From sequence record NC_061448.1: DNA of 64,000 nucleotides; one strand, 5' to 3'. The notes beneath the pieces were generated by a model, which worked only from the letters and a program-made list of their open reading frames with translations, made no database searches and was not told where the DNA came from. Every line of letters starts with the position of its first letter. Position 1 is the stretch's first letter. Positions 24,870 through 59,677 of this stretch are shown in pieces. The position numbers and the translations under genes are program-made.

Positions 24870-24923
24870 GCAAATAACTGGACAAAATAGCTCTTTATAT
24901 ACACACGCGACCTATGATACAAT
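24870..24923 (+). promoter_or_regulatory. early promoter P1: TGGACA box + extended -10
   Basis: GCAAATAACTGGACA, 33 bp, TGaTACAAT. Confidence 0.8.
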
Positions 24924-24976
24924 ATATGCAGACGCTGCATGTCGTAGCGCATACAACTACTGCCAAGGGGCATACA

Positions 24977-25675
24977 ATGAAAGCAGCAAACTTTGATAAA
25001 GCATTCAACGCGAAAGACGAAGCAATTCTGAACGCATACGCAGACAAAATTGTTGCGGCGCTTAACGAACTGGAACGTTACGACCTGAAGATTCAAATCA
25101 TCTTTGGTACCGACCCGTACAGCGAGTGCCCTGACTTCGTTAACGACCCGAACGGTTTTCGTGTCACACAGAACGGCGAAGAAATTTTTGATATTTACAC
25201 GCCGACTGAAAAACAAGTTGAAGGTGATTCGTCTGATGTTTTCATCTACGCATCGATCACTGGCGTCGAAGCCGCGAAGTGGGGCAAGGACGTTTCTGAT
25301 AATGACGTCGAAGAAATTGCCGCTGACCTGAACGAAGAAATCGAACGTGCTGCCCGCGTGTTCAATGAATCTGATCGCCCGATGCTGCAACAACTCGCAG
25401 ACGACCTGAACGCGAAAATGAAACGTACCGACGCTCGCGTGATCGTTACTAACGGTGCCGAAGACAATTTGATTGTTATGGTCGTGGGTTATGAAGACGG
25501 TGAAGTCAGCGACGAGTATGGTTTCTTCTTAGACCTGCCTTACACTGACGAAGCGGGCGAAGACGAGAATTACGTTCTGCACTATGCGGGTTACCCTGAT
25601 ATGAACGACTACACGTTCCGCACTGTTGACCTCGGCCAGCTCTCTGCTGCAATCGAAGAACTCGACCTGCTGTAA
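24977..25675 (+). CDS. highly acidic early protein
   Basis: AAGGGG RBS before ATG 24977; first gene after P1. Confidence 0.8.
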   Translation: MKAANFDKAFNAKDEAILNAYADKIVAALNELERYDLKIQIIFGTDPYSECPDFVNDPNGFRVTQNGEEIFDIYTPTEKQVEGDSSDVFIYASITGVEAAKWGKDVSDNDVEEIAADLNEEIERAARVFNESDRPMLQQLADDLNAKMKRTDARVIVTNGAEDNLIVMVVGYEDGEVSDEYGFFLDLPYTDEAGEDENYVLHYAGYPDMNDYTFRTVDLGQLSAAIEELDLL

Positions 25676-25690
25676 TCGCTAACTAACAAT

Positions 25691-25743
25691 GACTGCGGGG
25701 TTACGGCCCCGCCTACTTACTTCTATAGAGAGACACGACCATG
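25691..25743 (+). repeat. leader element copy 1 (hairpin + GAGAGACACGAC RBS)
   Basis: Homologous to 27261-27314 with a compensatory stem change. Confidence 0.75.
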
Positions 25744-26361
25744 ACTATGCACATCACTACTTTCTTTGTTAAACGTTCTTACGCTTCTCTGGCTGCTGGT
25801 TCATTCACTATTGCTTCTAAGCAAGTGCAAGAGCTGGTGGAGTCTGAGGTATTCATCGTGTATGCGAACACGGGCTTAGGCAACGCATTCGCTGTACGCA
25901 ACATCACCCTGACGCCTGTTGATGAAGCAAACGTGCGTGTTGAGTTCGACCCACTGACCGATGTTCACGCAATGCCACCGTCAGTGTTGCCTAAAGAAAG
26001 TCTGACTGAAAGCACACAGCAATATCTCATGTGCCCTGACGACGTGGCCGCTGCCCCGCGCTTCTGCGTATCTAACCACGCATCTGGCAACGAGCCGAAC
26101 ATGTTGAGCCTGAACCATGACGTGCGCGAGCGTCTGATTCAATATAAGGGCGGCATGATCAGCCTGACAGAGCTGGTGCTTGTGCTGCATGATCAAGATA
26201 TTTCAGTGACCGATATCCACCAGCATCGTCGCAATAAAGAGAAGTATGTTGCGCAGATCACAGAACGCACCTCACACGTTATCGAACTGTCGAAAGACAA
26301 CGGCGTTAAGCAGCACGACACAGACTTCCCGTTGCTTGCTCGCCTGAACGTGTATCTCTAA
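25741..26361 (+). CDS. hypothetical protein
   Basis: ORF track. Confidence 0.75.
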   Translation: MTMHITTFFVKRSYASLAAGSFTIASKQVQELVESEVFIVYANTGLGNAFAVRNITLTPVDEANVRVEFDPLTDVHAMPPSVLPKESLTESTQQYLMCPDDVAAAPRFCVSNHASGNEPNMLSLNHDVRERLIQYKGGMISLTELVLVLHDQDISVTDIHQHRRNKEKYVAQITERTSHVIELSKDNGVKQHDTDFPLLARLNVYL

Positions 26362-26364
26362 TCA

Positions 26365-26417
26365 GCACAAATCTGGACAAAATCGCCGTTGAGTTTAGGC
26401 GCTCAATGGCGTACTAT
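26365..26417 (+). promoter_or_regulatory. early promoter P2
   Basis: GCACAAATCTGGACA, 32 bp, TACTAT; also TTGAGT-17-TACTAT; inverted repeat CGCCGTTGAG/CTCAATGGCG. Confidence 0.75.
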
Positions 26418-26464
26418 GTAATCTCTAGCGCAATGACGCGCTCAATCAAGAAAGAGGCAATATC

Positions 26465-26710
26465 ATGTCAGAGAAACAAATCACACTCGACCTTATCGCG
26501 GACGTAGCATCGCCAACTGAAATCATCTTTGAAGATGGTGAGTCTTCTAACGACTGGCTCGCGCCGTATGATCTGCGCCTGACAGTGACGCAGCATGTAG
26601 GCCCGAACGGCTATCCCGAAGTTGCAATCATCGGCCACGAAGATGATCTGCGTCGCTTCTTGGCTGAGAAGCTGCCTGACACTGACGCCGAACTCGAAGA
26701 CGTGCGTTAA
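26465..26710 (+). CDS. small acidic protein
   Basis: GAGG RBS; first gene after P2. Confidence 0.75.
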   Translation: MSEKQITLDLIADVASPTEIIFEDGESSNDWLAPYDLRLTVTQHVGPNGYPEVAIIGHEDDLRRFLAEKLPDTDAELEDVR

Positions 26711-26761
26711 TCACTTATGGGGCCTCGTGCCCCATTTCTACTTTCTGCCTGAGATTCGACT

Positions 26762-27250
26762 ATGAAAAACCAATATCTGATTCTTCGCATGAGCGCCGCT
26801 GACCTGTACGACAAACAATTTCTGATGCGCGGCTTCAATCGCAAGCGTATCGAAAATGTCATCGGCGTTATCGCTGTCGTAGATAACTCTGATAACTTGT
26901 ATCACCTGATACGCATTAACGTTGACCTGTTGCAGTCAGACACGCAACAAAACTGGGCAAGACTTAGCTGGTCTAGCATCGACCGTGAGACTATCGACTT
27001 AGGCATGGAGCGTCTGCCTCCTGAACTCGCCAAGTCTATTCGTGCGATGCGCAACAATCGCATGTATCATACAATCGACACGACAATCCCTGTAGCGTTT
27101 CGTGATCGCCACACACAATTTGCATACACGCCAAGCGCTGTGCGCAAGATCGCTAACAGAGAAACGAAGTCACTCGACGACTTCACTGTAGAAGAAATCG
27201 TAGCGCACCTGAAACAACGTCTAGGCGCTGAGATTGAAATCAAGCTGTAA
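26762..27250 (+). CDS. hypothetical protein
   Basis: ORF track. Confidence 0.75.
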   Translation: MKNQYLILRMSAADLYDKQFLMRGFNRKRIENVIGVIAVVDNSDNLYHLIRINVDLLQSDTQQNWARLSWSSIDRETIDLGMERLPPELAKSIRAMRNNRMYHTIDTTIPVAFRDRHTQFAYTPSAVRKIANRETKSLDDFTVEEIVAHLKQRLGAEIEIKL

Positions 27251-27260
27251 GCACTAAACA

Positions 27261-27314
27261 GACTGCGGCGTTACGGCGCCGCTCATTATCACTTTAAAGA
27301 GAGACACGACTATG
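27261..27314 (+). repeat. leader element copy 2
   Basis: GACTGCGGCGTTACGGCGCCGC...AGAGAGACACGACTATG. Confidence 0.75.
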
Positions 27315-27890
27315 ACCGTAGTTGCATTCATCAAAACAAACGACACTACTCTGGCGACTGGCGAGATTCTGATTAAGCGTCCTCACTTCGAAGCGTTCTG
27401 CGAGTGTGAGATTGCTGTGCTGTACACTACAGGCAAAGAGCAGGGTAGCGCAAAAGCCTACGCACTGACTGACCTCATGTTGCACATTGTCGATAAAGAG
27501 CGCGTTAAGATCGTGTTCAAAGACAAGACGCCTATCGACGCGTCACTGATTCGTGAATATCAGTATGACGAGAAAGAAGATATGGCGATTGAAGCAGAGC
27601 AGCCTAAACTGCTGACCGACGTGCCTCGCTTCAACATCGTGTCTGACCTGAGCAGTGAATACAGTGTGACGCTGCCGTACGAAGCGCGTATGTGTATCGC
27701 TCAATACGTGTGTGGTCTGTTCAACACTGCGACGTTCAAACGTCGTATGACGCGCCTGAACTTTAAAGTCGTGTCTCTGATTACGCGAGGTCGACGTGAA
27801 GAAGGTATGCCTTACGCTATCTTCCGCCATCGCCTGAGTCAGCTTGCTACAATCTCTGACGGCAAGAACGCGATGCAAGTCTATCTGTAA
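27312..27890 (+). CDS. hypothetical protein
   Basis: ORF track. Confidence 0.75.
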   Translation: MTVVAFIKTNDTTLATGEILIKRPHFEAFCECEIAVLYTTGKEQGSAKAYALTDLMLHIVDKERVKIVFKDKTPIDASLIREYQYDEKEDMAIEAEQPKLLTDVPRFNIVSDLSSEYSVTLPYEARMCIAQYVCGLFNTATFKRRMTRLNFKVVSLITRGRREEGMPYAIFRHRLSQLATISDGKNAMQVYL

Positions 27891-27938
27891 ACAACCAACG
27901 CCCTGCATATCGCGGGGCTTTTCTGTTTGGAGAATGCT

Positions 27939-28199
27939 ATGATTCATTATACCCGTGACGAACTCGAAGAAATGGATGTGGTCGAGCTTGACCAGATCGC
28001 TAGTGACCGTGGTCTGCTTGATGACTTCGACGAAGAAGACGATCAAGACGAACACATGCTGGTGGGTTTGATTCTTGACGACCAGAACGAGCAACGCATG
28101 GCAGAAGAAGACGCTGCCGACAAACAACGCGCCGAAGATGATCGCGACCCGCGTATCAATCGTCGTGAAGATCAAGACGGCTCGGATGACTACTGCTAA
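27939..28199 (+). CDS. acidic protein with Rho-N/HeH-like motif
   Basis: GGAG RBS; LEEMDVVELDQIASDRGL. Confidence 0.7.
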   Translation: MIHYTRDELEEMDVVELDQIASDRGLLDDFDEEDDQDEHMLVGLILDDQNEQRMAEEDAADKQRAEDDRDPRINRREDQDGSDDYC

Positions 28200-28417
28200 T
28201 GACACCTACTGAACTCAATGAATATCTGCATCTGGTACTGACGCCTGTTGCTATGGCATGGCGTGAGCAGTTCCCCAAGAAGAAGCAGGTGATGGCGTCT
28301 GTTAAGACAGCGTACTCCTGTCGAATCAAATTCGTCGAAGACCGTGACGTTGAAAAACAGTGGCAAGCATTCTGCCGCACACACGGTCTCAAAAACGAAG
28401 AGACTCTCGAAATCTAA
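28199..28417 (+). CDS. hypothetical protein
   Basis: TAATG coupling. Confidence 0.7.
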   Translation: MTPTELNEYLHLVLTPVAMAWREQFPKKKQVMASVKTAYSCRIKFVEDRDVEKQWQAFCRTHGLKNEETLEI

Positions 28418-28420
28418 ATC

Positions 28421-28451
28421 AAAGGGCTGCCATTGCTGGTGGCCCTTTTTT
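28421..28451 (+). terminator. intrinsic terminator
   Basis: AAAGGGCTGCCA-TTGC-TGGTGGCCCTTTTTT. Confidence 0.85.
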
Positions 28452-28456
28452 CATTT

Positions 28457-28465
28457 CTGTAAATA
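28457..28465 (+). promoter_or_regulatory. CTGTAAATA putative phage-sigma promoter
   Basis: Directly after a terminator, 32 nt before ATG 28498. Confidence 0.55.
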
Positions 28466-28497: not shown

Positions 28498-28866
28498 ATG
28501 CGCCGCTTCGTTATCGTCTTCAACGTCAGTCAGGCAGAGCTTGATGACCGTCGCTTCTTTCAATCTAAATTCAATATCGTTTCGTCACTGCGCCGCGCTC
28601 GCTGTGTCTTTCTCGTCGTTCGTGAAACCAAGCAGGTGCTGTGTGTTTCAGAACTGACCTATCAACCTAGCGTAGAGCCGGGTATTCGTCAGGTAGACTT
28701 CGATGTACCGCGTGACGTAACAGCATACGTGCTGCCATTCGCTGAACTCACCGCAGCGATGATCAACAACTCACAAGACCAAAGCATTCGCTACTTCGGG
28801 CGTCAGCTTGAAATGGATGCAGACCAGCTCAAGCGCTTTCACACTCAACTGGAGATTATTTCATGA
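28498..28866 (+). CDS. hypothetical protein
   Basis: ATG after promoter motif. Confidence 0.65.
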   Translation: MRRFVIVFNVSQAELDDRRFFQSKFNIVSSLRRARCVFLVVRETKQVLCVSELTYQPSVEPGIRQVDFDVPRDVTAYVLPFAELTAAMINNSQDQSIRYFGRQLEMDADQLKRFHTQLEIIS

Positions 28867-29108
28867 CACGCCCTACACTCGGCACCTCTCTGGGTGCTCG
28901 CTTCGCTGTTACCTCGAAAGAGAATATCGAACGCCGCAAGAAAACAAACCCGCGTCGCAGCACGTTAAGCGCAGCAACAACCAAAGAGTTGCATGAAGCT
29001 GTGAACGCTCTGGCAATCAAACTCAAGACCACACGTTCAGGCGCTATCGAACGAGCGGTGGCCGAACTGTGTGACAAGCATGGCATTGACTACGGGACGC
29101 TTGAATGA
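28863..29108 (+). CDS. ribbon-helix-helix (CopG/Arc-like) DNA-binding protein
   Basis: RSTLSAAT-TKELHEAVNALAIKL-KTTRSGAIERAV strand-helix-helix pattern. Confidence 0.65.
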   Translation: MTRPTLGTSLGARFAVTSKENIERRKKTNPRRSTLSAATTKELHEAVNALAIKLKTTRSGAIERAVAELCDKHGIDYGTLE

Positions 29109-30041: not shown

Positions 30042-30349
30042 ACGAGAAAGCATACTGGCGATTCGACATAGACAAACGTGCGGGCAATATCAATCTGCCG
30101 CATCTCCCTGCTGATTACACTGTGGTGCTCAAAGACAACCTAACGTTACAGCGTACTACAGTGAAGATTGATGGTCTGACTATCGTGTCTTCTCAAGGGA
30201 AGACGTGTGGCAGCCTACAGTTTATCACAGGTGCAAACATGCTTATTTGGTCGTCGTTTGAGGCATTCAGATTCACGCTGATCGTAGACGAAGTGAAGCG
30301 CTACAGACTGAGCGCTATCGACCGTCAATCTGCTGAACTCTGCAAATAA
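30029..30349 (+). CDS. hypothetical protein
   Basis: ORF track; stop lies inside the P3 box. Confidence 0.65.
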   Translation: MDNLNEKAYWRFDIDKRAGNINLPHLPADYTVVLKDNLTLQRTTVKIDGLTIVSSQGKTCGSLQFITGANMLIWSSFEAFRFTLIVDEVKRYRLSAIDRQSAELCK

Positions 30350-30395
30350 CTGGACAAAATAGCTCTTTCATTCAGTAGTCGACCTATGATATAAT
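30342..30395 (+). promoter_or_regulatory. early promoter P3
   Basis: GCAAATAACTGGACA, 33 bp, TGaTATAAT. Confidence 0.85.
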
Positions 30396-30423
30396 AAACG
30401 TGAGCGCAGTGCTCATACAACAC

Positions 30424-30440: not shown

Positions 30441-30899
30441 ATGACTACTTATAACATCTCTGATCTCAAAACCCCAGAATCTTTCGTAAACGCGCAGTTC
30501 GGCCATCTGGAAGATCTTCTCGAAAAACTGCGTAACGCTCTGGGTCGTGATGACCTGTCATTGCAGTTAGATGCGGACGGGGAAAACATTCAGGACGTTA
30601 ACACTTCCCCCGACGCTCTTGTGGGAAAAAGCCTGATTCAAATTCTCGTCACACTTCACGGGTCAGACGTAGATGAAGACGACGATGGTGGTCAGGCAGT
30701 TTCTTCTCGTGATGCTTGGTACGCTGCCTTGGGTTTCCCTCACGTAGAAAATGAATGGGGCGAGTGGACGAACTCATTCACGATGTGGGTAGAAGCAGCC
30801 GACGGGGATATGCTTGAAGAAATCTCCGTAGAGAATGGAAACCCAAAAATGATTGAACAACTAGTAGAGCGTATCAACTACTGGTTCCCTGCTGTTTAA
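30441..30899 (+). CDS. acidic early protein
   Basis: First gene after P3. Confidence 0.8.
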   Translation: MTTYNISDLKTPESFVNAQFGHLEDLLEKLRNALGRDDLSLQLDADGENIQDVNTSPDALVGKSLIQILVTLHGSDVDEDDDGGQAVSSRDAWYAALGFPHVENEWGEWTNSFTMWVEAADGDMLEEISVENGNPKMIEQLVERINYWFPAV

Positions 30900-35767: not shown

Positions 35768-36171
35768 TTATGCAAAAGACGTACATGAGTCATTGGGGAT
35801 CGCGGTATGTGCGCACTATATCAGGCCGCTGGTATTCAGTTCATGGACGCGAAGGAACGTGGGTAACGAATCGCTATGGCACAACATTCTACCGCAGCGG
35901 TTCAGAAGTGTGGCGCGACATTAACAAGGGATGGGAAGTTGCGCTTGAGCATGAACTTCATCGACGTACCGAAATCGAACACAAAGAAGTGGACGATAAG
36001 TATAAGCACTGGGGCAAGATAGTTAAGGCTATCGCAGTGCAGTCAGTTGACCAGAACAATGAGCACACAGCACAATTAGCTGAGATGCTCGAAGCGCTAA
36101 GACAGCGCTTTTATGGTCAGCAACTACAGCAACTAAGCATAACATTGGACGAAACAGCCGTTACAAGCTGA
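35764..36171 (+). CDS. hypothetical protein
   Basis: GTGA overlap; stop lies within P4 spacer. Confidence 0.7.
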   Translation: MIMQKTYMSHWGSRYVRTISGRWYSVHGREGTWVTNRYGTTFYRSGSEVWRDINKGWEVALEHELHRRTEIEHKEVDDKYKHWGKIVKAIAVQSVDQNNEHTAQLAEMLEALRQRFYGQQLQQLSITLDETAVTS

Positions 36172-36189
36172 GTCGATTTATGCTATAAT
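36137..36189 (+). promoter_or_regulatory. early promoter P4 (degenerate box)
   Basis: GCATAACATTGGACG, 32 bp, TGcTATAAT. Confidence 0.7.
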
Positions 36190-36225
36190 AGAGATGAACG
36201 CTAGACACTCGTTTAGCTACTTACA

Positions 36226-36248
36226 TGAGGATATGTACATGAAAAAGA
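36226..36248 (+). repeat. 23-bp RBS/start repeat TGAGGATATGTACATGAAAAAGA, copy 1 (copy 2 at 36573-36595)
   Basis: Perfect direct repeat. Confidence 0.85.
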
Positions 36249-36559
36249 CAAAAGTTGAACCTACCATTGAAGGCCGTATCTTTACTTTGTTTGGTGTTGG
36301 TCCTGTTCCGGACGAATCAACAATACCATTCGCAGACCGTGATACATTTCTTCCGATGCTGCGTAAAGTTCAGGAAAGTGCTCAACTGGAACGCATTCGT
36401 GGTTTGTCCTGTTGTCCGTATTGCCGAGAGACAATGATGCTCGGTGAATACACCAAAGACAACTGGCTGTGGTCCTATTCATATCAGCATATGATTGAAC
36501 ACCACAACGTAACGCCGTCCGCAGAATTTATTGCTTACGTCGAAACCGCTTCCAAGTAA
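36239..36559 (+). CDS. hypothetical protein with CxxC and His motif
   Basis: RGLSCCPYCR...HMIEHH. Confidence 0.75.
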   Translation: MKKTKVEPTIEGRIFTLFGVGPVPDESTIPFADRDTFLPMLRKVQESAQLERIRGLSCCPYCRETMMLGEYTKDNWLWSYSYQHMIEHHNVTPSAEFIAYVETASK

Positions 36560-39332: not shown

Positions 39333-39596
39333 ATGGCTGTTGGTTTTGTAAAAGACGATGGCGTAAACGATACCATCGAAACAAACGTGATGAACGAGAT
39401 TGACCGCGCTCGTTCAGAACTTCTAGGCGTGGGTTCAGATTACTGCGTCAACCCTGATTGCGGTGCAAAGATTCCTGTGATGCGCAAACTCGCTATGCCG
39501 AATGCGCGTTACTGCATTACCTGTCAGGCAGCGCATGACGGCACTGCTAATGTCGGCTATAATCGCCGTGGCTCAAAAGATTCTCAGTTGAGGTAG
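39333..39596 (+). CDS. ybiI: DksA/TraR C4 zinc-finger protein, YbiI-like
   Basis: C-x4-CG..IP..R..A.P.AR.C..CQ and terminal YNRRGSKDSQLR as recalled for enterobacterial YbiI. Confidence 0.9.
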   Translation: MAVGFVKDDGVNDTIETNVMNEIDRARSELLGVGSDYCVNPDCGAKIPVMRKLAMPNARYCITCQAAHDGTANVGYNRRGSKDSQLR

Positions 39597-43408: not shown

Positions 43409-44389
43409 ATGAGATTCGGATTCGCCTGCAAGCTAATCGACGAGAAAGGCAAACAACCCTACCCAAACAAAAGTCTAAGCTACAAGCACTTCTCAAAACT
43501 TAGTCTCGACGAACGACGCCAGAAGTTGCGTGAGATCGTAACAGTCAATCTAACGTCGTTGTACGATATGATTGCCCACGTCGGTATGTTGCGCCGAGAC
43601 ATGCGTATGTTTCGAATCACCAGTGAACTACTTCCGTTGTACACGCACCCGCAAGTAACGCATCTCTACCAAGAGCGTGAACTCGCCGCGCATATCGAAC
43701 ACTGGTTGTGGAAGTGCGGTACGTTGGCACAAGGCGCTGGCGTTAGACTTTCGTTTCACCCCGGTCAGTTCACCGTGCTTGCATCTGATCGACCTGACGT
43801 TGTGCTCAACTCGATTAACGAACTTGAGTACCATGCGTACTGCGCCTATCACATGGGGTACGGTCGTCGCTTTCAAGACTTCAAAATCAACATTCACCTG
43901 AGCGGTAGACTTGGTGCAAAAGGGTTTCGTGCAGCACACTCGAAACTTTCTGATCACTGCCGAAAGATGTTGACCGTTGAGAACGACGAGATCACGTCCA
44001 GCATTGAAGACTGTTTAGAACTCGCCGACATTTGCCCGATAGTTCTCGATGTTCATCATCACTGGGTAATGACAAACGAATACATTCAGCCGACAGATGA
44101 TCGTGTTCAACGTGTCATAGAGTCATGGCGAGGCATCACGCCTGTTGCTCACTACTCTGTGTCGAAGCCTGAGTTCGTGCCGTCACGTGGTTTGCCAGAT
44201 CAAAACAAGCTCGCTGCTAATCGTATGCAGTTACGCGCACACTCTGACTACTATCACAATGACGACGTAAACGACTGGGCCCTCAGCTTCACTGATTTTG
44301 ACTTGATGTGCGAGTCTAAAGCTAAAAACAGAGCACGTATAAAACTGGCTTGTTTTCGAGCGAACTCTGCAAATAACTGGACAAAATAA
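43409..44389 (+). CDS. uvsE: UV DNA damage endonuclease (UvsE/UvdE)
   Basis: RFGFAC, MFRITSELLP, RLSFHPGQF, INIH, LTVENDE, VLDVHHH, AHSDY, DLMCESKAK. Confidence 0.95.
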   Translation: MRFGFACKLIDEKGKQPYPNKSLSYKHFSKLSLDERRQKLREIVTVNLTSLYDMIAHVGMLRRDMRMFRITSELLPLYTHPQVTHLYQERELAAHIEHWLWKCGTLAQGAGVRLSFHPGQFTVLASDRPDVVLNSINELEYHAYCAYHMGYGRRFQDFKINIHLSGRLGAKGFRAAHSKLSDHCRKMLTVENDEITSSIEDCLELADICPIVLDVHHHWVMTNEYIQPTDDRVQRVIESWRGITPVAHYSVSKPEFVPSRGLPDQNKLAANRMQLRAHSDYYHNDDVNDWALSFTDFDLMCESKAKNRARIKLACFRANSANNWTK

Positions 44390-44422
44390 GGCTTGTTTTC
44401 GATGGTTGCCCTATGTTACAAT
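44369..44422 (+). promoter_or_regulatory. early promoter P5
   Basis: GCAAATAACTGGACA, 33 bp, TGtTACAAT. Confidence 0.85.
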
Positions 44423-44479
44423 GTATGTGAGCACTTTAATCGCGTTTTTCACATATAATAAGACAGAGGAAATAAGACT

Positions 44480-44782
44480 ATGATGTCCACAACAACCATC
44501 GCTACTAAAGCAAGCGTTACACCGTCCGCCAAGCATTCTTTTGGTATCACAGGTATCACGCCTACCAATCGTATCTCCTGCGTTTGGCCCGGCGCACTGG
44601 AAGTTCCTGCTCATATTAAACGTTGGTGCCGCGCGAACGAAATCTTGACCGACCTTGATGCTTACATGCGTGTTCGTTTCAAAGGTCGTCGCGCAGACAT
44701 TCTGAATCTGGTTGCTAAACACCTTGCACCGGACAATCAAGAACTGGCTGTTCGTATTCTCGCAACTATCACCGAGGCTTAA
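44480..44782 (+). CDS. hypothetical protein
   Basis: GAGGA RBS; first gene after P5. Confidence 0.75.
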   Translation: MMSTTTIATKASVTPSAKHSFGITGITPTNRISCVWPGALEVPAHIKRWCRANEILTDLDAYMRVRFKGRRADILNLVAKHLAPDNQELAVRILATITEA

Positions 44783-46618: not shown

Positions 46619-47787
46619 ATGATATTACCAGTATTGCTCGCAGCATTTTTGAACGTGGTACTACCGAACAACGTGACGCGTTACGTGCTGTTGCGAATAC
46701 CGTGCTTGTGCCTAACATGCGACTCGCTTATGAGTTTGCTGAACCTACAGTTGAAGAAACGTATCGCCTGCTTGAGGGTATTTCGTTTACAGGCGACGGT
46801 AAGATGATGCTGCCGGGTGACGAGATCTATGCTCTCGATAATCTTCTGCGTAAAGAGTGGCAGAAGACTTTCTTCGACGCTGTTGCGAACATGACGCTTA
46901 CCATGTTCTGCACTGACCCGCATACTGCCGGAAAAGGCTTTTGGCCGCGCAATAACAGCGAATGCTGTGAGTTTATCACACGCGCCTTTATCTGGACGAT
47001 TGCTCAACACGGCCTGACCAACATTCTGCTGCGTGATACAAAAGTCGTAAGCCACACGCGTCTGGCGCAGTTTATCATTGCGCTGCAAACAGAAGGTAAA
47101 GACGATGGCTATGCGCGTCATTTCAGTTTGTATGACCCACATTCAGATACAGGCAGTATCACTGTTTCCAACCTGTGGTCTGACGAATACAAAGCGGCCC
47201 GAGTGAGTGAGACTATTGCTAGTCGACCGCCAGAATACGATGATGTTCGCCGCATGAACTTCGATGACCTTGCTGATCTGTGTGAGCGTCTTGGACTTAT
47301 TGCATTGAAGTCTCAGCCTGACTGCGATTGTGAAGATGACGATTGCGAATGCGACGAGCTGGTAACTCGTCACGATCTTGACCGCGACCCTGACGACCTG
47401 CGCGAAATCTTCTACGCCAAGTACGGCGACCCTGACGACGAAGGTGTTGTAGACGAAGAAGACTGGATTACAGGCGCTTCACTCATGGAAGTTGAAGTCG
47501 ATCTGCCTGTTGTTACTCTGCATCAGCCTGAGCCTAAAACAAATCTGCCGCGCGCTTCTCACATGAAAAAGAAAAAGCCGATGGCGAAATCTACTAACAA
47601 GAGCCGCGTGGTTCTTCGAGCAGACCAGCAGATTTGGCATGAGCTGGACAGCAAGCAAGAGTTCGGTGATCGTCGTTTTGCTATCACTCTCGTATCGCGT
47701 CATACGTGTGGTATCAATCGACCTGTCGCAACGAACAATGAAGCGCTCGCTATCGCATACGCCCTATTAGCGCTAGAAAGCAAATAA
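46615..47787 (+). CDS. multidomain protein with Rho-N/HeH-like motif and acidic Cys patch
   Basis: VRRMNFDDLADLCERLGL; DCDCEDDDCECD. Confidence 0.8.
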   Translation: MNDITSIARSIFERGTTEQRDALRAVANTVLVPNMRLAYEFAEPTVEETYRLLEGISFTGDGKMMLPGDEIYALDNLLRKEWQKTFFDAVANMTLTMFCTDPHTAGKGFWPRNNSECCEFITRAFIWTIAQHGLTNILLRDTKVVSHTRLAQFIIALQTEGKDDGYARHFSLYDPHSDTGSITVSNLWSDEYKAARVSETIASRPPEYDDVRRMNFDDLADLCERLGLIALKSQPDCDCEDDDCECDELVTRHDLDRDPDDLREIFYAKYGDPDDEGVVDEEDWITGASLMEVEVDLPVVTLHQPEPKTNLPRASHMKKKKPMAKSTNKSRVVLRADQQIWHELDSKQEFGDRRFAITLVSRHTCGINRPVATNNEALAIAYALLALESK

Positions 47788-47832
47788 CTGGACAAACTAG
47801 CGCTTCTATCTGAGGCGCTTCTATGATATAAT
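47780..47832 (+). promoter_or_regulatory. early promoter P6
   Basis: GCAAATAACTGGACA, 32 bp, TGaTATAAT. Confidence 0.85.
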
Positions 47833-47899
47833 CATAGATAGAGCAATATCGCTCTCAACGTCTTTTTTAACTATACGTTTATAACGGGAATTGTCATTT

Positions 47900-48202
47900 A
47901 TGTCACGCACTATTTCACGCAAGAAAGCAGTTAACCTGATGGCTACAACCTACAACGCAAAACATCCTGAATATCTTCCGCGCCTGTTGGCAGAAGACAT
48001 GGATTCAACTCACCTGTTCGAATTTCGTGAGATGGTTGTAGCAAAGATTCAGGCAGGCGAAGACCCGACCAAAGTTGTTGACGATATGATCGACACGGCG
48101 ATTCGCGTAACTCAGGTTCGTCGTCGTACAAGCAACGATTACAATCCGAAAATCGCCGATGTACTGACTGACGAAATGCGTGAGATGCTTCGTAACCTGT
48201 AA
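47900..48202 (+). CDS. hypothetical protein
   Basis: First gene after P6. Confidence 0.7.
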   Translation: MSRTISRKKAVNLMATTYNAKHPEYLPRLLAEDMDSTHLFEFREMVVAKIQAGEDPTKVVDDMIDTAIRVTQVRRRTSNDYNPKIADVLTDEMREMLRNL

Positions 48203-51846: not shown

Positions 51847-52815
51847 ATGAACGAACAATTCGAAGCAATCCCCGCTGATAAAACCTGTCTGCCATTCTAT
51901 TCTTCTGCGGCAATTAACATCTACTTCAACGACCGTATCAAACGCCTCGGTCTGACGAACGTATGGGCATACGTTGAGCGTAACAACCGCCCTGCTTTCG
52001 GTGATGACCAGCTGATGGAAGCTCTGCATTATCATTCGACCGAACACATGAAGCATGTAACTGCTCTCGCTCTCTGGTTGCTCGATTGCGAAGCTGTTCA
52101 CGATTGGCAATACAGCAATGGTGCAGTACCGTTAGCTATCGCCTGTATGTTCCACGACATGAATCATTCACTCGGTCAGAAAGACGATGCGTACAACGTT
52201 CAACAGGCTATTGCTGCTCTGGAGAAAGCTGCACACCACGAACTGGCCGATGCAGTGCTGATTGATAACTGCGACATTGCTGCTGACCTGATTCGTGTCA
52301 CGCAATTCCCGTACTCAGATGACCGCAAGCCGAAGAACATGATTGAGCGTTGCATTCGTGATGCGGACATTCTCTACGGTATGCAGTCGTTTGTTATCGA
52401 CTACGTGATGTATGGTCTGCGTGACGAAGTGAACAGCAACCTTGAAATGCCTTACCCGTTCAGTCGTCAGGACTGGGCTGCTGGTCGTGTTGACTTCCTG
52501 CGTAGCGTTGAGATGTTTACGCCAACCGGTAAAGATGCGATGGACTGGTTGCTCGACGAAGAAAACGATCACAACCATCAGTCGAAGATTGAAAGCTGGA
52601 TGACCGACAACATTGAGTTCGTCCTCACCAGTGCGCGTCATATCAAAGCGAACGATGTTCTGTTTATCGACACGCCCGAAGATACGTTGAAAGCTCGTCG
52701 CTTGATCGAGCGCATTACAGACATGGGCGTGGGTTTCAACGTCTATTTCAACGACGGCGCTTCGATTCATCTGCGTAACGGAGAGCACTGCATTCGTATC
52801 GAAAGAAGCAAATAA
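51847..52815 (+). CDS. HD-domain phosphohydrolase
   Basis: YHSTEH...FHDMNH...IRDAD (H...HD...D). Confidence 0.85.
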   Translation: MNEQFEAIPADKTCLPFYSSAAINIYFNDRIKRLGLTNVWAYVERNNRPAFGDDQLMEALHYHSTEHMKHVTALALWLLDCEAVHDWQYSNGAVPLAIACMFHDMNHSLGQKDDAYNVQQAIAALEKAAHHELADAVLIDNCDIAADLIRVTQFPYSDDRKPKNMIERCIRDADILYGMQSFVIDYVMYGLRDEVNSNLEMPYPFSRQDWAAGRVDFLRSVEMFTPTGKDAMDWLLDEENDHNHQSKIESWMTDNIEFVLTSARHIKANDVLFIDTPEDTLKARRLIERITDMGVGFNVYFNDGASIHLRNGEHCIRIERSK

Positions 52816-52861
52816 CTGGACAAAATAGCCGTGTCGTCTGACAGTGCGCCTATGATATACT
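52808..52861 (+). promoter_or_regulatory. early promoter P7
   Basis: GCAAATAACTGGACA, 33 bp, TGaTATACT. Confidence 0.85.
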
Positions 52862-52894: not shown

Positions 52895-53125
52895 ATGATG
52901 CACGATATATACAAGGTGAGTGCTGTCCTGTTCTACTTGCTTGGTGCTATGGCTTTCCTTGCACATATCGTTGGCTTCGTGAAGAACTGGATGAAGATAA
53001 AAGAAATGCGGCAGAAAGCACAGGCGAAGATTGCCAAAGTGAAAACGCCGCATGAATTGATTAAACGCCGCTTGCGTAAAGCAGAAGAACGCGCAAGACA
53101 CCGCCCACGTAAACTGAGAGATTGA
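52895..53125 (+). CDS. single-TM membrane protein with basic tail
   Basis: VSAVLFYLLGAMAFLAHIVGFV. Confidence 0.7.
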   Translation: MMHDIYKVSAVLFYLLGAMAFLAHIVGFVKNWMKIKEMRQKAQAKIAKVKTPHELIKRRLRKAEERARHRPRKLRD

Positions 53126-55946: not shown

Positions 55947-55954
55947 GGTGATCT

Positions 55955-56254: not shown

Positions 56255-56308
56255 GCATAAAACTGGACAAAATGAGGCTAGTATTTGAGGGTCTCATTGT
56301 GTTATACT
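56255..56308 (+). promoter_or_regulatory. early promoter P8
   Basis: GCATAAAACTGGACA, 33 bp, TGtTATACT. Confidence 0.85.
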
Positions 56309-56342
56309 AAAAGCGTAGCTTGTGCTGCGCTTTTTTCACTTA

Positions 56343-56356: not shown

Positions 56357-56361
56357 ACAAA

Positions 56362-56826
56362 ATGCTGAACGAAACGAAAGCGACCGTATCTGATATTGAA
56401 TTGCAGGACCGTATGATGGACGCTGCTGTCCAGAAAGTTATCGAACTGAAACCTGAATGGATCGACGTTTGTGCTGCTGGTCTTCGCTTGTACCTGACCG
56501 TGTGTGACCAGCTCGGCGGTCCGATTCCTGAAATGCGTTTCGTTCACAACAACAAGCCGTGCAAACTCTCTTTCAACCTGAAAGAAGCTACTGAGGGTAG
56601 TGAGTTCGTTGCGAACGATATTGACCACGAAAAGCAGATGGAAACTTGCGAAGCGATTCTTGCTACAGCCGAAGCGAATGAAGAAGGTCATTCGCTGATG
56701 GATTTAGCGATTTGTTCTGGTCGCCTGTTCATGATCGGCTATGACGGACTTGCGGGTACTATCGGCAAAGTGTGTTTCCGCTTCGCCAAGAAGAACTACA
56801 CAATGAATCTGGTTGAGGGTGAATAA
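56362..56826 (+). CDS. acidic hypothetical protein
   Basis: First gene after P8. Confidence 0.8.
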   Translation: MLNETKATVSDIELQDRMMDAAVQKVIELKPEWIDVCAAGLRLYLTVCDQLGGPIPEMRFVHNNKPCKLSFNLKEATEGSEFVANDIDHEKQMETCEAILATAEANEEGHSLMDLAICSGRLFMIGYDGLAGTIGKVCFRFAKKNYTMNLVEGE

Positions 56827-56827
56827 C

Positions 56828-57708: not shown

Positions 57709-57719
57709 CAATCCAGTTT

Positions 57720-57792
57720 GGCTCGCCCGTCCAGAAATGCTCACCCCCAATGAGGCGCCCCTCGCAGAGGCGTGACGACGCGGGTCCTTTTT
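57720..57792 (+). ncRNA. candidate structured RNA or branched terminator
   Basis: Closing stem GGCTCGC..CGTC/GACG..GCGGGTCC, two internal hairpins, TTTTT tail. Confidence 0.35.
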
Positions 57793-57833
57793 AGAACGTA
57801 CTGGTTAGTGCGTTGCATAAAGAACCCAAAACA

Positions 57834-57847
57834 AACAGGAGGCTGTT
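57834..57847 (+). promoter_or_regulatory. SD-in-loop hairpin AACAG-GAGG-CTGTT
   Basis: Perfect 5-bp stem. Confidence 0.7.
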
Positions 57848-58192
57848 ATGAAGTTTAACGATGTAAGTAAAGATGCTCAGGTAATTCTTATGGGCGGCGC
57901 ACTTGCCGGAGTTGTTGAAGTCTTCGGACGTGACGACGAAGACGAGGGTAAGCAGTTGATTGAAACTGCGCTGCGCCAAGTCGGTCTGACGTTCGACGAG
58001 TTCCGCACTATGATGACTGAAATGCCGCCAGAAGTTGAAGCGGAAGTTGCGTCTGTTCAGACAGTAGCTGCGGACCCTGACGATGACTTCGACGACCAGC
58101 AGCTGGACACGATGGAAGAACGTCCCGGCAATCTCGACGAAGACGGGCGTACTGATGAAAACGGCTGGCAAACACTTGAAGACGAACAATAG
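57848..58192 (+). CDS. highly acidic small protein
   Basis: AGGAGG RBS; D/E-rich. Confidence 0.8.
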   Translation: MKFNDVSKDAQVILMGGALAGVVEVFGRDDEDEGKQLIETALRQVGLTFDEFRTMMTEMPPEVEAEVASVQTVAADPDDDFDDQQLDTMEERPGNLDEDGRTDENGWQTLEDEQ

Positions 58193-58228
58193 CAGACGCC
58201 GACACGCATAGCAGATAGTCGCATCTAA

Positions 58229-58282
58229 GCAAAAAACTGGACAAAATGAGGGTTGTATCAGAATAGCGTCCTGAGCTATACT
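58229..58282 (+). promoter_or_regulatory. early promoter P9
   Basis: GCAAAAAACTGGACA, 33 bp, TATACT. Confidence 0.8.
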
Positions 58283-58288
58283 ATATAG

Positions 58289-58373
58289 ACAGCGAGACAA
58301 CGTTCTCTCTGCTAAATGCCTTGTAACTGCTTGACCGTGTGTTTTTCGTTTTCCCGGGCACACGGTCCTTTTT
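58289..58373 (+). ncRNA. candidate ~85-nt small RNA or attenuated leader
   Basis: Between P9 and terminator GACCGTGTG/CACACGGTC-CTTTTT; no RBS-ORF. Confidence 0.4.
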
Positions 58374-58486
58374 AAAGTCGCTTCGCTGAGGCTGCTTTAA
58401 AAAGGGTTCGATACCCTTTGAGCGCTTTCGGATTTACGCGGTTTTCACCGACTGTGCTCTCATGTTAAACCGCAAAGGAAATAAAT

Positions 58487-59125
58487 ATGCCAAATCCAAA
58501 AGTAGTTGCCAAACTTGCTGAACGTGCTAAACGTACTCCGCGCGGTCCTTCGTCTGTTAAACCTAAAGCTGCGAAAGAGCGTCACGATAAAGAGTCGATG
58601 ACAACACCAGAGCACAAGAAAAACTTGCCGCCTGTTGTTGCTGCGCCTAAGATGCGTGATGACGAGCGTGTGTACTTTCTTGTACACGCAATCTTATCCT
58701 CATGGAAATTGAGCGCTGTTACGACTGATGCGAATGCGGCTGCTACCGGCATTATCAAAGTGTCACGCCGTAAGATTGAAGGTGCCCTGCGTGACCTCAA
58801 GAATACGCGCTTCACTAAAATCCCGTCGCTCATTAGCGATATTCTGACCGATATGGATCTCTGCAAAGAGTTCGGGCAGTGGGTATACGTCGAACATGAT
58901 TCGCCTGATTGGATTTTCGTTCGACTGCCTGAGAACAGCACACAAGTTATTCGTGCTGACATTAGCTCTGACCGCACGGGTCAAACGTCTGCGGCTGTGA
59001 CGACCTCTGTTGAAGTGCTGCTGGACGATGCGTACCTCGAAGACGAGGAAGACGAGATTCCTGAGAACGTCGAATATGACGACGAAGATGAATCTCACGT
59101 TAACGAAGAAGAGGAGGAAGAATAA
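58487..59125 (+). CDS. protein with basic N-terminus and acidic C-terminus
   Basis: AAGGA RBS. Confidence 0.8.
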   Translation: MPNPKVVAKLAERAKRTPRGPSSVKPKAAKERHDKESMTTPEHKKNLPPVVAAPKMRDDERVYFLVHAILSSWKLSAVTTDANAAATGIIKVSRRKIEGALRDLKNTRFTKIPSLISDILTDMDLCKEFGQWVYVEHDSPDWIFVRLPENSTQVIRADISSDRTGQTSAAVTTSVEVLLDDAYLEDEEDEIPENVEYDDEDESHVNEEEEEE

Positions 59126-59574
59126 TGACCTCTTCAATTCGTCCGGCATCCGAAACAGCCGCAATGATCATTGAAAACGTCACTCTCTATTCTCAAGAGA
59201 AGGGACACGACCATACGCTGCCGCGCTTTAAAATGCCCGACACTGCGATACGTCGAATCTCTGGTCATGCTCGCGTTCTGCCTGAAAGTTATATCGAACA
59301 GGTATCTATCGAGCTACAACAACTCGACTGGATGATGATGCGATACAATGCAGGCGAGTTCCTCTTTCTGCACTTTGATATACCGAAGAACTGGACGCGA
59401 TTGAGCGCGAAGCGTGTTGTGCCAAACGACGACCCTAGCGCTGAGTACGATACGTGGACGTTGCCTGAGCTACAGGGCTTCGCTCAACGTAACGACTTCT
59501 TACAGCCCGACGAAGAGGGGTTTCACGATAGAGCGTCATTGATTCGCGCTATCATGCGAGGCGAGACTCACTAA
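59125..59574 (+). CDS. hypothetical protein with C-terminal Rho-N/HeH-like motif
   Basis: YDTWTLPELQGFAQRND...DRASLIRAI. Confidence 0.75.
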   Translation: MTSSIRPASETAAMIIENVTLYSQEKGHDHTLPRFKMPDTAIRRISGHARVLPESYIEQVSIELQQLDWMMMRYNAGEFLFLHFDIPKNWTRLSAKRVVPNDDPSAEYDTWTLPELQGFAQRNDFLQPDEEGFHDRASLIRAIMRGETH

Positions 59575-59584
59575 GCAATAACGA

Positions 59585-59609
59585 GCGGGGCAGTATATAG
59601 CTGCCCTGC
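59585..59609 (+). terminator. hairpin, possible terminator
   Basis: GCGGGGCAG-TATATAG-CTGCCCTGC; poor U-tract. Confidence 0.5.
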
Positions 59610-59623
59610 TATCTGCGAAGTAT

Positions 59624-59677
59624 GCAGAAAACTGGACAAAATCGTGGTTGCTATCTGAAAGCGACCTATGATATACT
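59624..59677 (+). promoter_or_regulatory. early promoter P10
   Basis: GCAGAAAACTGGACA, 33 bp, TGaTATACT. Confidence 0.85.

Follow-up and report, generated by a model that had tools for sequence, protein, structure and literature searches.

The early promoters of phage T4 are aided by the injected ADP-ribosyltransferase Alt. Structurally, they have been described as 'UP/-35/TGn/-10' promoters with additional consensus regions (PMC2988021), and T4-type phages also carry promoter-early stem-loop (PeSL) cassettes (PMC2839356, PMC4122927). The UP element, whose 17-bp consensus is AAAWWTWTTTTNNNAAA (quoted in PMC2412878), can boost TGn/-10 promoters without a good -35 (PMC2613000). The phage group to which Erwinia phage pEa_SNUABM_1 belongs has no RNA polymerase of its own and encodes a sigma factor (PMC7412058, PMC7824862).

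Here, we analysed a window of 64,000 nucleotides (record positions 186001-250000) of pEa_SNUABM_1, a jumbo phage of the genus Alexandravirus with a genome of 267 kb. The window carries ten copies of a promoter module (Table 1), which we read, with about an even chance of being right, as promoters that would be used by the host (sigma-70) RNA polymerase, most likely early, and that would bear an UP-like upstream element.

Table 1. Coordinates and components of the ten promoter modules, in window positions.
Promoter	Span	Strand	Box	-35	TGn	-10	Hairpin	Next gene	Remarks
P1	24870..24923	+	24870-24891	TTTATA (weak) 24894-24899	TGA 24915-24917	TACAAT 24918-24923	24933-24949 (5')	gp252 at 24977	inferred start ~24930; orthologues in AD1, Alexandra, Y3
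P2	26365..26417	+	26365-26386	TTGAGT 26389-26394	none	TACTAT 26412-26417	AGCGCAATGACGCGCT 26427-26442	gp254 at 26465	
P3	30342..30395	+	30342-30363	TTTCAT	TGA	TATAAT 30390-30395	30400-30416	gp264 at 30441	gp263 stop codon within box
P4	36137..36189	+	GCATAACATTGGACGAAACAGC (degenerate)	TTACAA	TGC	TATAAT 36184-36189	36200-36217	gp276 at 36239	box within gp275 3' end; orthologues in AD1, Alexandra, SNU7, Y3
P5	44369..44422	+	44369-44390	TTGTTT	TGT	TACAAT 44417-44422		gp292 at 44480	box is last 6 codons and stop of UvdE gene gp291
P6	47780..47832	+	47780-47801	TTCTAT	TGA	TATAAT 47827-47832	AGAGCAATATCGCTCT within 47837-47862	gp299 at 47900	
P7	52808..52861	+	52808-52829		TGA	TATACT 52856-52861	none (5')	gp307 at 52895	short leader
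P8	56255..56330	+	56255-56276		TGT	TATACT 56303-56308	56313-56330, terminator-like, with T-run	gp313 at 56362	hairpin begins 5 nt past -10
P9	58229..58373	+	58229-58250	TTGTAT	none	TATACT 58277-58282	58287-58313 (5'), then terminator stem 58333-58368 + TTTTT	gp317, not before 58487	candidate small RNA (~85-nt unit)
P10	59624..59702	+	59624-59645	TTGCTA	TGA	TATACT 59672-59677	GCAGACGCAATAGTGCGTCGC 59682-59702	gp319 at 59735	

All ten boxes listed in the preliminary description were found, and all lie on the + strand. Nine of them (P1 to P3 and P5 to P10) are exact matches to GCANAWAWCTGGACA, and when up to two mismatches were allowed the window gave 10 matches, whereas 100 shuffled versions averaged 1.67 +/- 1.24 and never yielded as many. 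The tenth of these matches, at 63416, lacks a -10 and does not belong to the class. The degenerate copy P4 has three mismatches to GCANAWAWCTGGACA; its orthologues in four other genomes show it to be real. When all 266,939 bp of the genome were scanned with a position-weight matrix, the ten window copies were recovered, together with two degenerate ones elsewhere (record positions 258527 and 262351) and none on the - strand. A scan of the same genome for TTGACA-N16-18-TATAAT (at least 10 of 12 positions) gave 22 matches, which is chance level, and revealed no other sigma-70-like promoter family; the boxed repeats are thereby predicted to be the sole host-type (sigma-70, extended -10) promoters of pEa_SNUABM_1.

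The module is ordered as an upstream element from about -66 to -38, a weak -35, TRTGn and a TAtAaT -10. The box exists as described, except that the conserved block is not 15 bp long: it spans 22 bp, GCAAATAACTGGACAAAATAGC, at -59/-60 to -38/-39, preceded by about 7 further conserved base pairs (S-A-A-s-T-c-t). TGGAC(A/G) ends 33 bp before the -10 hexamer in seven copies and 32 bp before it in P2, P4 and P6, in agreement with the 32-33 bp first reported, as are the -10 hexamers (TATACT four times, TATAAT three times, TACAAT twice, TACTAT once), the TGn of eight copies and the CCTATG of five. The TCTGC-like motif reported before P1, P3 and P10 occurs 10-16 bp upstream, and the orthologues of these three copies retain it. 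The proximal A-tract is preceded by an invariant pyrimidine-purine step, and in most copies the transcript would begin with a stem-loop, 3' of the promoter.

The module also occurs at matching positions in five related genera, with a variant form in the distant phage NCTB. We compiled 49 sites from seven genomes, among which T-12, A-11 and T-7 are invariant and T at -17 occurs in 39; TG at -15/-14 occurs in 47-48, in a compilation that favoured TG. The search for fixed spacing in relatives bore out the original expectation, since the box lies 31 bp (n=3), 32 bp (n=32) or 33 bp (n=14) from the -10 in 49 of 49 sites, none of them shifted by a helical turn either way. The ACAAAA tract lies 30 nt from the -10, also in NCTB. 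These data support a genuine promoter class in which an upstream element is locked to an extended -10.

The same comparison bears on the proposal that TGGACA is a -35 hexamer moved to -51..-46 and read by a remodelled or unusual sigma factor, by appropriation or long reach. TGGACA is indeed 5/6 identical to TTGACA, and the hexamers found at the regular 17-18 bp spacing are poor -35 sequences, with only three of the ten modules passing a standard -35/-10 scan. A partial -35 nevertheless exists, 17 bp from the -10 (18 bp in the 33-bp distance class): in all genomes taken together, T stands at -35 in 48 of 49 sites, the next two bases being T/A and G, and TTG is frequent. Moreover, the relatives read TGGTCA, TGGCTA, AGGCTG or TGTCCA at the position of TGGACA, often within one genome; no MotA or AsiA domain was detected among the 71 proteins of the region; and the phage sigma factor gp243 has a probable promoter class of its own, CTGTAAATA, with one copy, at 14531, preceding the gp243 gene. 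The comparative data already contradict a displaced -35, which is scarcely credible.

What remains constant in the box across relatives is limited to GCA (nearly invariant), GG and two A-tracts. The latter, at about -57 to -53 and -45 to -42, lie one helical turn apart and could serve as minor-groove docking sites for both C-terminal domains (CTDs) of the RNA polymerase alpha subunits, the proximal one adjoining sigma region 4 bound at the weak -35. The upstream element would thus make good a poor -35 and allow phage promoters to beat host promoters directly after infection, while the short stem-loop at the start of most transcripts would protect their 5' end. Among the three mechanisms first proposed, an alpha-CTD-type element fits best, given the position of the box and A-tracts in the canonical UP register. 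The consensus AAAWWTWTTTTNNNAAA fits best from -58/-59 (8.3 and 8.2 of 14 specified positions), 1-2 nt off the canonical -57, where the score is 7.6, and random windows score 4.4 +/- 1.6; a score of at least 9 is reached by 47% of sites vs 0.9% of random windows. Hybrid promoters in JA11 and NCTB, in which the box lies at its usual distance from the phage's other -10 type (CTGTAAACT, CTGTAAAATA), argue for a box partner independent of the sigma factor in use, such as alpha. The genes behind the boxes look early, being small ORFans by sequence: 63 of the 71 region proteins have no Pfam family, and for most first genes behind boxes no PHROG match was found.

Other features argue against the UP reading. 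The canonical T-tract centre (-51 to -47) is here CTGGA or TAGGC with invariant GG, conservation extends to -66, past the usual UP limits, and only about 8 of 14 consensus positions are matched because the centre and the 5' end hold G/C bases. We know of no need of alpha-CTD binding for the GG or GCA bases, and the conserved G/C positions are beyond what known alpha binding explains. This G/C punctuation (GCA, GG and the pyrimidine-purine step) may bend or shape the DNA or add a second recognition layer.

In a tentative alternative, doubtful although it deserves attention, the box is the site of a protein specific to the phage lineage, either an activator that enters along with the phage genome or a post-infection regulator (e.g. 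an early shut-off repressor), docking at about -49 against host RNA polymerase alpha or sigma, with the A-tracts merely part of its site. It would account for the base-specific invariants GCA and GG, one helical turn apart between the A-tracts, for the conservation to -66, and for the retention of GG(N2-3)AAAA even in NCTB. The core consensus differs between phages of one host, in discrete versions (CTGGACA in pEa_SNUABM_1, TAGGCTG/A in Y3, TGGTCA in Yoloswag), and within-genome homogenization is mild; such a pattern would fit gene conversion, or a box that co-evolves with a phage protein. In bacterial genomes, the box scan listed at least 120 loci, among which were single matches in unrelated taxa; three had a -10 at the right distance, all in a single MAG, on contigs resembling phage DNA that was mis-binned, and among these listed matches no host regulon uses the box.

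A candidate for such a protein is gp260 (28863-29108), a sub-threshold ribbon-helix-helix protein (RHH_1, 18.5 bits vs a cut-off of 20.5) that is encoded behind a CTGTAAATA-type promoter and would therefore appear later than the products of the box-driven genes. Against it, gp260 homologues were detected in AD1, Alexandra and Y3 only and were not found in the fetched loci of the box-carrying SNU7, Yoloswag, JA11 and NCTB, its single-sequence model is poor (pLDDT 62), and none of the 71 region proteins has a recognisable DNA-binding domain at E <= 0.001. A post-infection activator would further need another host-type promoter, none of which emerged from the genome scan, several core variants in one genome imply that any binder must be tolerant, and injected sequence-specific activators are rare.

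The genome contains a second promoter motif, AATCTGTAAATA, in 25 copies on both strands, oriented with the genes; in the form CTGTAAATA it is probably the promoter class of gp243. At least one CTGTAAATA copy, at 28454, lies inside the boxed region, which also contains intrinsic terminators, so that the claim of boxes driving the whole accessory region was overstated. In pEa_SNUABM_1, the 5' half of the box and the three bases before it, TCTGCAAATA, match the second motif TCTGTAAATA at 9 of 10 positions and, likewise, the 'putative middle/late promoter' annotated in phage Lu11, CTGTAAATAnnnGGTA (RefSeq NC_017972), parallels CTGCAAATAactGGAC. The box could accordingly itself be a promoter-like site for the sigma class that the phage encodes: transcription might start near offset 14, from a tandem middle-type promoter, or a disabled copy might retain the phage-sigma holoenzyme and so block the early promoter at later stages of infection; an invariant pyrimidine-purine step indeed lies 7-8 nt past CAAATA, where the start site would fall. 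This is unlikely: the likeness fades in other genera (box offsets 3 and 5 are variable) and may be mere A/T richness, an invariant C in place of T indicates that both motifs are kept distinct, and independent tandem promoters need no spacing fixed to +/-1 bp over randomized spacers.

Gene content around the boxes is plastic. In comparison with AD1, Alexandra and Y3, several indels start 93-121 nt downstream of a box start, and in AD1 the P2 cassette lies on the opposite side of the gp253 orthologue. Identity is slightly higher among paralogous boxes of one genome (72%; 81% in pEa_SNUABM_1) than among non-orthologous boxes of different genomes (68%). One may thus ask whether conservation is mainly a recombination signal of PeSL-type mobile cassettes, the copies being kept alike by mutual exchange and the module serving small-gene shuffling, with no role of the box in initiation. 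Exchange would, however, homogenize the spacers as well, and these vary as first described, with a near-random 36% identity between paralogues; most indels of the region do not adjoin a box, and the invariance of the same positions in six genera and in NCTB points to selection on function, which makes this explanation very improbable.

Returning to the UP-like reading, the box at -60 to -38 abuts the -35 as in rrnB P1-type UP elements (sub-sites near -42 and -52), has its A-tracts in the canonical register and would be expected, by analogy, to offset a weak -35 at TGn/-10 promoters (PMC2613000). Unlike them, it has a conserved G/C-containing core in place of the T-tract, an invariant 5' GCA and conservation to -66, and its information content is much higher than that of natural UP elements. 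As in T4 (PMC2988021), a phage lacking a polymerase of its own would take over that of the host through a family of very complete sigma-70 promoters with conserved sequence 5' of the -35, and the promoters are scattered among small genes without known function; however, the -35 of T4 early promoters is good (GTTTAC) and their upstream tracts are A/T-rich, no G/C position being fixed, whereas in pEa_SNUABM_1 conservation resides chiefly in the upstream element and the -35 is weak. PeSL cassettes likewise repeat early-promoter and stem-loop modules between small ORFs of a plastic region, with some gene indels adjoining, but their stem-loop lies upstream of the promoter and terminates the previous gene, whereas here it lies downstream, similarity is limited to the box rather than the whole module, and the phage lineage is another one. 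T4 middle promoters (MotA box plus AsiA) also join a phage-specific box to a sigma-70 -10, often with TGn; sigma appropriation of this kind, as initially suggested, is not supported, given that the box lies at about -50 rather than replacing the -35 at -30, that the -35 T/TTG is retained and that no MotA or AsiA domain was detected among the 71 region proteins. The Lu11 motif CTGTAAATAnnnGGTA matches AATCTGTAAATA, the other promoter class, which has a T4-late-like -10 (TAAATA) and neither TGn-TATAAT nor the upstream box, only the 5' half of which resembles it. The boxed class is best read as a phage-specific version of an established promoter design, one whose upstream element is unusually rich in information.

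The ten modules considered here, P1 to P10, each consist of a conserved upstream box and an extended -10, and lie within 35 kb of the genome of Erwinia phage pEa_SNUABM_1 (genus Alexandravirus, 266,939 bp, host Erwinia amylovora), in a stretch of 68 small genes. The window matches record positions 186001-250000 of this phage (NC_061448.1) with 100% identity. The + strand carries genes from about 188.7 kb, past the end of the record, to about 47 kb; on the - strand, genes for structure and replication occupy 47-188.6 kb. The genes lying behind the boxes are mainly small ORFans, accompanied by UvdE, dUTPase, Tpt1, a radical-SAM protein, a transglycosylase and a DksA/TraR-type zinc-finger protein; 63 of the 71 proteins scanned (window 24977-63665) had no Pfam family, and Rfam and tRNA scans of the window returned no matches. 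The group formed by PaBG, Lu11, NCTB, the Dickeya AD1 and JA phages, Y3, Yoloswag and Alexandra has no RNA polymerase of its own and carries an RpoD-like sigma (PMC7412058), and the host core enzyme is thought to serve such jumbo phages (PMC7824862, PMC13282480). At least one promoter class must be read by the unmodified host enzyme.

The preliminary description had defined the class by a 15-bp pattern ending in TGGACA, and most of its account held. The pattern has nine exact matches at the coordinates it gave, all on the + strand, and 10 matches with up to two mismatches, against 1.67 ± 1.24 in shuffled sequences; the degenerate copy at 36137 (P4) is confirmed by orthologues in other genomes. 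The box-to-(-10) distance, the hexamer types, the TGn extension in 8/10 copies, CCTATG in five and a TCTGC motif upstream of P1, P3 and P10 are likewise as first described. Searching the whole genome on both strands with a 22-mer (up to six mismatches) recovered exactly the ten copies, while a genome-wide position-weight scan added two weaker ones and found none on the - strand (Table).

Box promoters and associated features of pEa_SNUABM_1 (window positions unless marked as record positions)
Feature	Position	Strand	Remark
P1 box	24870	+	TCTGCAAATA at 24865-24876
P2 box	26365	+	gene-content difference, 26365-27890
P3 box	30342	+	TCTGCAAATA at 30337-30348
P4 box	36137	+	degenerate
P5 box	44369	+	TCTGCAAATA at 44364-44375
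P6 box	47780	+	
P7 box	52808	+	gene-content difference, 52895 region
P8 box	56255	+	
P9 box	58229	+	
P10 box	59624	+	
Weaker box copy	record 258527		before topoisomerase II gene
Weaker box copy	record 262351		before topoisomerase II gene
AATCTGTAAATA	3601	+	
AATCTGTAAATA	8148-8157	-	
AATCTGTAAATA	14531	+	5' of sigma gene gp243
AATCTGTAAATA	19972	+	
AATCTGTAAATA	20766	+	
AATCTGTAAATA	28454	+	two mismatches
Intrinsic terminator	28421-28448		
Terminator/CTGTAAATA cassette	28421-28465		
gp258	28199-28417		annotated endonuclease
gp260	28863-29108		RHH candidate
gp264	30441-30899		first gene of P3
gp276	36239-36559		
gp281	39333-39596		DksA/TraR-type zinc finger
P5 hairpin	44427-44450		terminator-like
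P8 hairpin	56313-56336		terminator-like
P9 unit	58287-58373		candidate small RNA
Repeated 10-mers	60670-61180		gp319

The conserved block is 22 bp long (GCAAATAACTGGACAAAATAGC); S-A-A-s-T-c-t, just upstream of it, is semi-conserved. If the -10 hexamer is placed at -12 to -7, the 22-bp box occupies -59/-60 to -38/-39 in every copy, its spacing varying by ±1 bp only, and the element as a whole spans about -66 to -38. Across a compilation of 49 sites from seven genomes, the invariant features are GCA (nearly so; offsets 0-2 from the box start), A4, A6, GG (10-11), a pyrimidine-purine step (13-14) and AAA(T) (15-18). Boxes abut or overlap the stop codon of the upstream gene. Paired by hand as a dyad, 5/11 positions match, which makes a CRP- or FNR-like dimer site unlikely.

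T-12, A-11 and T-7 occur in 10/10 window modules and in 49/49 sites across genomes, where they were entry requirements of a compilation that also favoured TG; the hexamers read TATAAT, TATACT, TACAAT, TACACT or TACTAT. TG at -15/-14 is found in 8/10 modules, 47/49 compiled sites and about 44/51 sites of a position-weight list drawn up without conditioning on TG. Two bases 3' of the box, a T that had not been selected for stands in 48/49 sites of the seven genomes, followed by T/A and then G. Together they make up the TTG half of a -35 hexamer, whose spacer is 17 bp, or 18 bp where TGGAC(A/G) ends 33 bp from the -10, the class that prevails in pEa_SNUABM_1. Upstream of the -10, c-T-n-T-G-n corresponds to the TRTGn form of the extended -10 (PMC2613000). 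With the conserved -35 T and TRTGn, the modules are complete, -35-poor sigma-70 promoters plus an upstream element, and not -35-less. Transcription by the sigma-70 holoenzyme is predicted from these elements to start 6-8 nt downstream of the -10.

The idea that TGGACA is itself a -35 hexamer displaced to -51..-46 is contradicted by this retained T and by the variability of the core, which over seven positions reads CTGGACA, CTGGTCA, CTGGCTA/G, TAGGCTG/A or ATGGACA, often within one genome; JA11 has TGTCCA at this position. Inspection by eye showed no alternative -10 at 17 bp after TGGACA. A generic sigma-70 scan gave chance-level counts and recovered 3/10 modules, and no other sigma-70-like promoter family was found genome-wide.

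The box promoters are real and specific to one phage lineage. Modules occupy syntenic sites in Dickeya AD1, Erwinia Alexandra, pEa_SNUABM_7 (Snuvirus), Y3 (Sasquatchvirus), Yoloswag and Dickeya JA11 (Salmondvirus), and are also present in two metagenomic relatives. Over the 49 sites the box-to-(-10) distance is 31 bp in 3, 32 bp in 32 and 33 bp in 14. Spacers share 36% identity between paralogues (about random) and 51% between orthologues, and boxes 72% and 76%, respectively; boxes that stay alike next to diverged spacers of fixed length indicate selection on spacer length and box sequence, not on spacer sequence. Within a genome the boxes are slightly homogenised (81% in pEa_SNUABM_1 vs 68% between non-orthologues of different genomes), and E. 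amylovora phages favour differing cores. In the distant NCTB (UvdE 40% identical, 42% G+C), TAACTTTTTTATCnnGGTACAAAA-N-TGCTATAAT is present seven times, with 30 nt between A-tract and -10, the same as in the box phages, and the examined parts of Lu11 (including its ORFan end) and PaBG hold no box modules. Hybrid promoters occur in JA11 (extract L045, 33176 and 36619) and NCTB (extract L166, 35574), where the box lies at its usual distance from CTGTAAACT or CTGTAAAATA instead of TGnTATAAT. Scans of IMG/VR and bacterial genomes placed the box, among the matches listed, in this phage lineage only, with singletons elsewhere lacking a -10; for the exact pattern in the genomes of 185,579 species, the matches listed include no host regulon, only scattered single matches without a -10 and three contigs of one MAG. 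These three contigs, from JAVWLC01, a 'Raoultibacter sp.' MAG (gut actinobacterium; L059, L063, L075), bear complete box promoters and look like mis-binned contigs of a phage from this group.

Judged from sequence, the modules are best filed as phage sigma-70 promoters, probably early, with an unusually rigid and information-rich element in the UP position, and the box most likely acts as an UP-type element with a predicted alpha contact. UP elements lie between -60 and -40, with sub-sites near -42 and -52 (PMC2613000, PMC2412878), and the box, directly 5' of the -35, coincides with this location. Compared with the 17-bp UP consensus AAAWWTWTTTTNNNAAA (14 specified positions), the boxes fit best when the consensus starts at -58/-59, 1-2 nt off the canonical -57; another version of the consensus peaked in the same register. 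The mean match is 8.3/14, with the T-tract half unmatched, vs 4.4 ± 1.6 in random windows, and 47% of sites reach at least 9 vs 0.9% of controls. Matches stem from two A-tracts, at about -57 to -53 and -45 to -42, and the place of the central T-tract is occupied by CTGGA, a G/C-containing core with an invariant GG. The box would serve as a direct dock for polymerase adjoining the -35. Such a dock, unlike an upstream class-I activator site, predicts spacing locked to ±1 bp with no helical-turn shifts, and the hybrid promoters suggest a sigma-independent partner, of which alpha would be one.

What is known of alpha-CTD and UP elements does not explain invariant G/C positions or spacing locked to ±1 bp. 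Further points left over by the UP reading are the GG core, the near-invariant GCA, conservation to -66, the differing cores of host-sharing phages and homogenisation, and together they would accommodate a box-binding protein specific to the phage, or exchange among the copies. A tentative reading, which we hold to be rather improbable, is that the box is more than an UP element and docks a lineage-specific factor (a protein brought in with the virion or made early, or the phage sigma acting away from its own promoters). This factor would hold host RNAP at a fixed distance, about -49, from the extended -10, in a promoter class conserved from Erwinia/Dickeya jumbo phages to the marine NCTB and usable with host- or phage-type -10. 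No positive evidence for a phage-specific box-binding protein was found, and the 71 proteins of the region include no DNA-binding Pfam domain. Among host factors, consensus sites for Fis, IHF, DnaA, the marbox (MarA/SoxS/Rob), CpxR, PhoB and PhoP were compared informally by eye, and none fits. A promoter for a single-subunit phage polymerase was also rejected: the 842-aa ORF encodes a RecA/UvsX-like recombinase, and phages of the group have no RNA polymerases (PMC7412058, PMC7824862).

A second motif, AATCTGTAAATA, occurs in 25 copies genome-wide (up to one mismatch), on both strands and in gene orientation, 25-60 nt 5' of many start codons, including that of gp243. Its TAAATA resembles the T4 late -10. 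The RefSeq record of Lu11 annotates the same sequence, CTGTAAATAnnnGGTA, as 'putative middle/late promoter', and it is present in NCTB. This is probably the promoter class of the phage sigma, and gp243, which belongs to sigma-factor PHROG 17569, shows a faint Pfam Sigma70_r2 match and had no match in a PDB sequence search, most likely reads it. No strict copy falls in record 206766-251503, within which all ten boxes lie (210870-245624). Here the motif is seen as a two-mismatch copy directly after a terminator, as part of a recurring cassette of strong intrinsic terminator, TTTCATTTCT and CTGTAAATA motif found also at record 146031 and 177635 (- strand). This cassette precedes gp259-gp261, and the accessory region is accordingly not under the box promoters alone, as had been supposed when they were said to drive all of it. 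Terminators internal to the region are placed at 26717, 27900, 28421 and 29503. The box might itself be a promoter-like site of the phage's own sigma class: in pEa_SNUABM_1, TCTGCAAATA, comprising the 5' half of the box and the three preceding bases, is 9/10 identical to second motif TCTGTAAATA, and Lu11's CTGTAAATAnnnGGTA parallels CTGCAAATAactGGAC. This likeness weakens in other genera, however, and we retain the idea as a low-probability rival to the UP-type element.

The putative RHH protein gp260, put forward earlier as a candidate, is below the Pfam cut-off and missing from several box-bearing genomes in the loci compared. Its single-sequence structure model is poor. Lying behind a terminator and CTGTAAATA motif, it would be made later, which would suit a role in shut-off rather than activation. 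The zinc-finger protein gp281 (PF01258, 31.8 bits) is conserved throughout the six enterobacterial-phage genera, with identities of 63-94%. DksA/TraR-type proteins bind polymerase and are not known to bind DNA, and gp281 could bind the secondary channel and bias transcription toward the box promoters, which are A/T-rich between -10 and start.

Downstream of the -10, hairpins of -5 kcal/mol or lower are found in 78% of the 49 sites vs 28% of 3000 random 30-nt windows (Mann-Whitney p = 8e-11, the sites being non-independent). They start 5-11 nt 3' of the -10; their stems vary among paralogues with pairing kept, several families (P2, P6, P10 and relatives) share the loop motif GCAATnnnGC, and the P7 family has no hairpin. 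T-runs follow the P8 and P5 family hairpins and their orthologues, giving them a terminator-like appearance. As these hairpins begin 5 nt after the -10, the predicted start would fall inside or at the 5' arm, so that the full terminator would form on upstream read-through transcripts and not on those started there. P9 has no direct gene; an approximately 85-nt unit follows it, composed of a 5' hairpin, a linker, the stem GACCGTGTG...CACACGGTC and TTTTT. The terminator stem covaries in six genomes, with 7/11 pairs changed on both sides, and in Y3, pEa_SNUABM_7 and Yoloswag the next box promoter comes 170-210 nt further on, with no intervening gene. The unit, which has no Rfam match, is a candidate phage small RNA.

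Several differences in gene content relative to AD1, Alexandra and Y3 start directly 3' of box promoters. Among these four phages gp276 is found only in pEa_SNUABM_1, relatives have an additional 690-750-nt gene downstream of P7 and a different first gene at P3, and in AD1 the P2 cassette lies on the opposite side of the gp253 orthologue. AD1 and Alexandra lack the 215-223-nt gene gp258 at the corresponding position; the gene may be a small homing-endonuclease-type insertion. Elsewhere, the commonest 10-mers of the genome, GACGAAGAAG, GAAGACGAAG and similar, cluster in gp319 and at record 251-256 kb and code for Asp/Glu-rich stretches; the peak of AT skew, 0.25, falls in window 60001-62000.

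The literature searched, with partial coverage, yielded no description of the box promoters or of how this jumbo-phage group starts its programme. The modules, which are conserved in six genera or more, provide a concrete, testable set of about 10-12 candidate early promoters in each genome. As predicted starts of transcription units they can guide the annotation of about 50 related genomes, and one points to a conserved candidate small RNA. Should host polymerase alone be enough for the box to work, it would be a compact part for building strong promoters in Enterobacterales and a natural experiment in the grammar of UP elements; if a phage factor is required, it would mark a new takeover mechanism.

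Among known systems, T4 MotA/AsiA middle promoters differ in that their activator box, centred at -30, takes the place of the -35, whereas the box of pEa_SNUABM_1 is centred at about -49, the -35 T is kept and TTG is common; no MotA or AsiA Pfam domain was found among the 71 proteins. PeSLs are repeated cassettes of early promoter and stem-loop that occur where the genomes of T4-type phages are plastic, and a part in gene shuffling is attributed to them (PMC2839356, PMC4122927). They are similar in being repeated early sigma-70 modules between small ORFs of a plastic region. Their stem-loop, however, lies upstream of the promoter and terminates the preceding gene, whereas in pEa_SNUABM_1 no hairpin precedes the boxes and one lies downstream. 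About half of the clean indels vs AD1 are within about 130 nt of a box, with many others elsewhere and all at gene borders anyway, and in comparisons with AD1, Alexandra and Y3 some indels start 93-121 nt downstream of a box. The resemblance to PeSLs is one of lifestyle, not of membership. The nearest precedent is found in the early promoters of T4, which have been described as 'uber' UP/-35/TGn/-10 promoters carrying further regions of consensus (PMC2988021).
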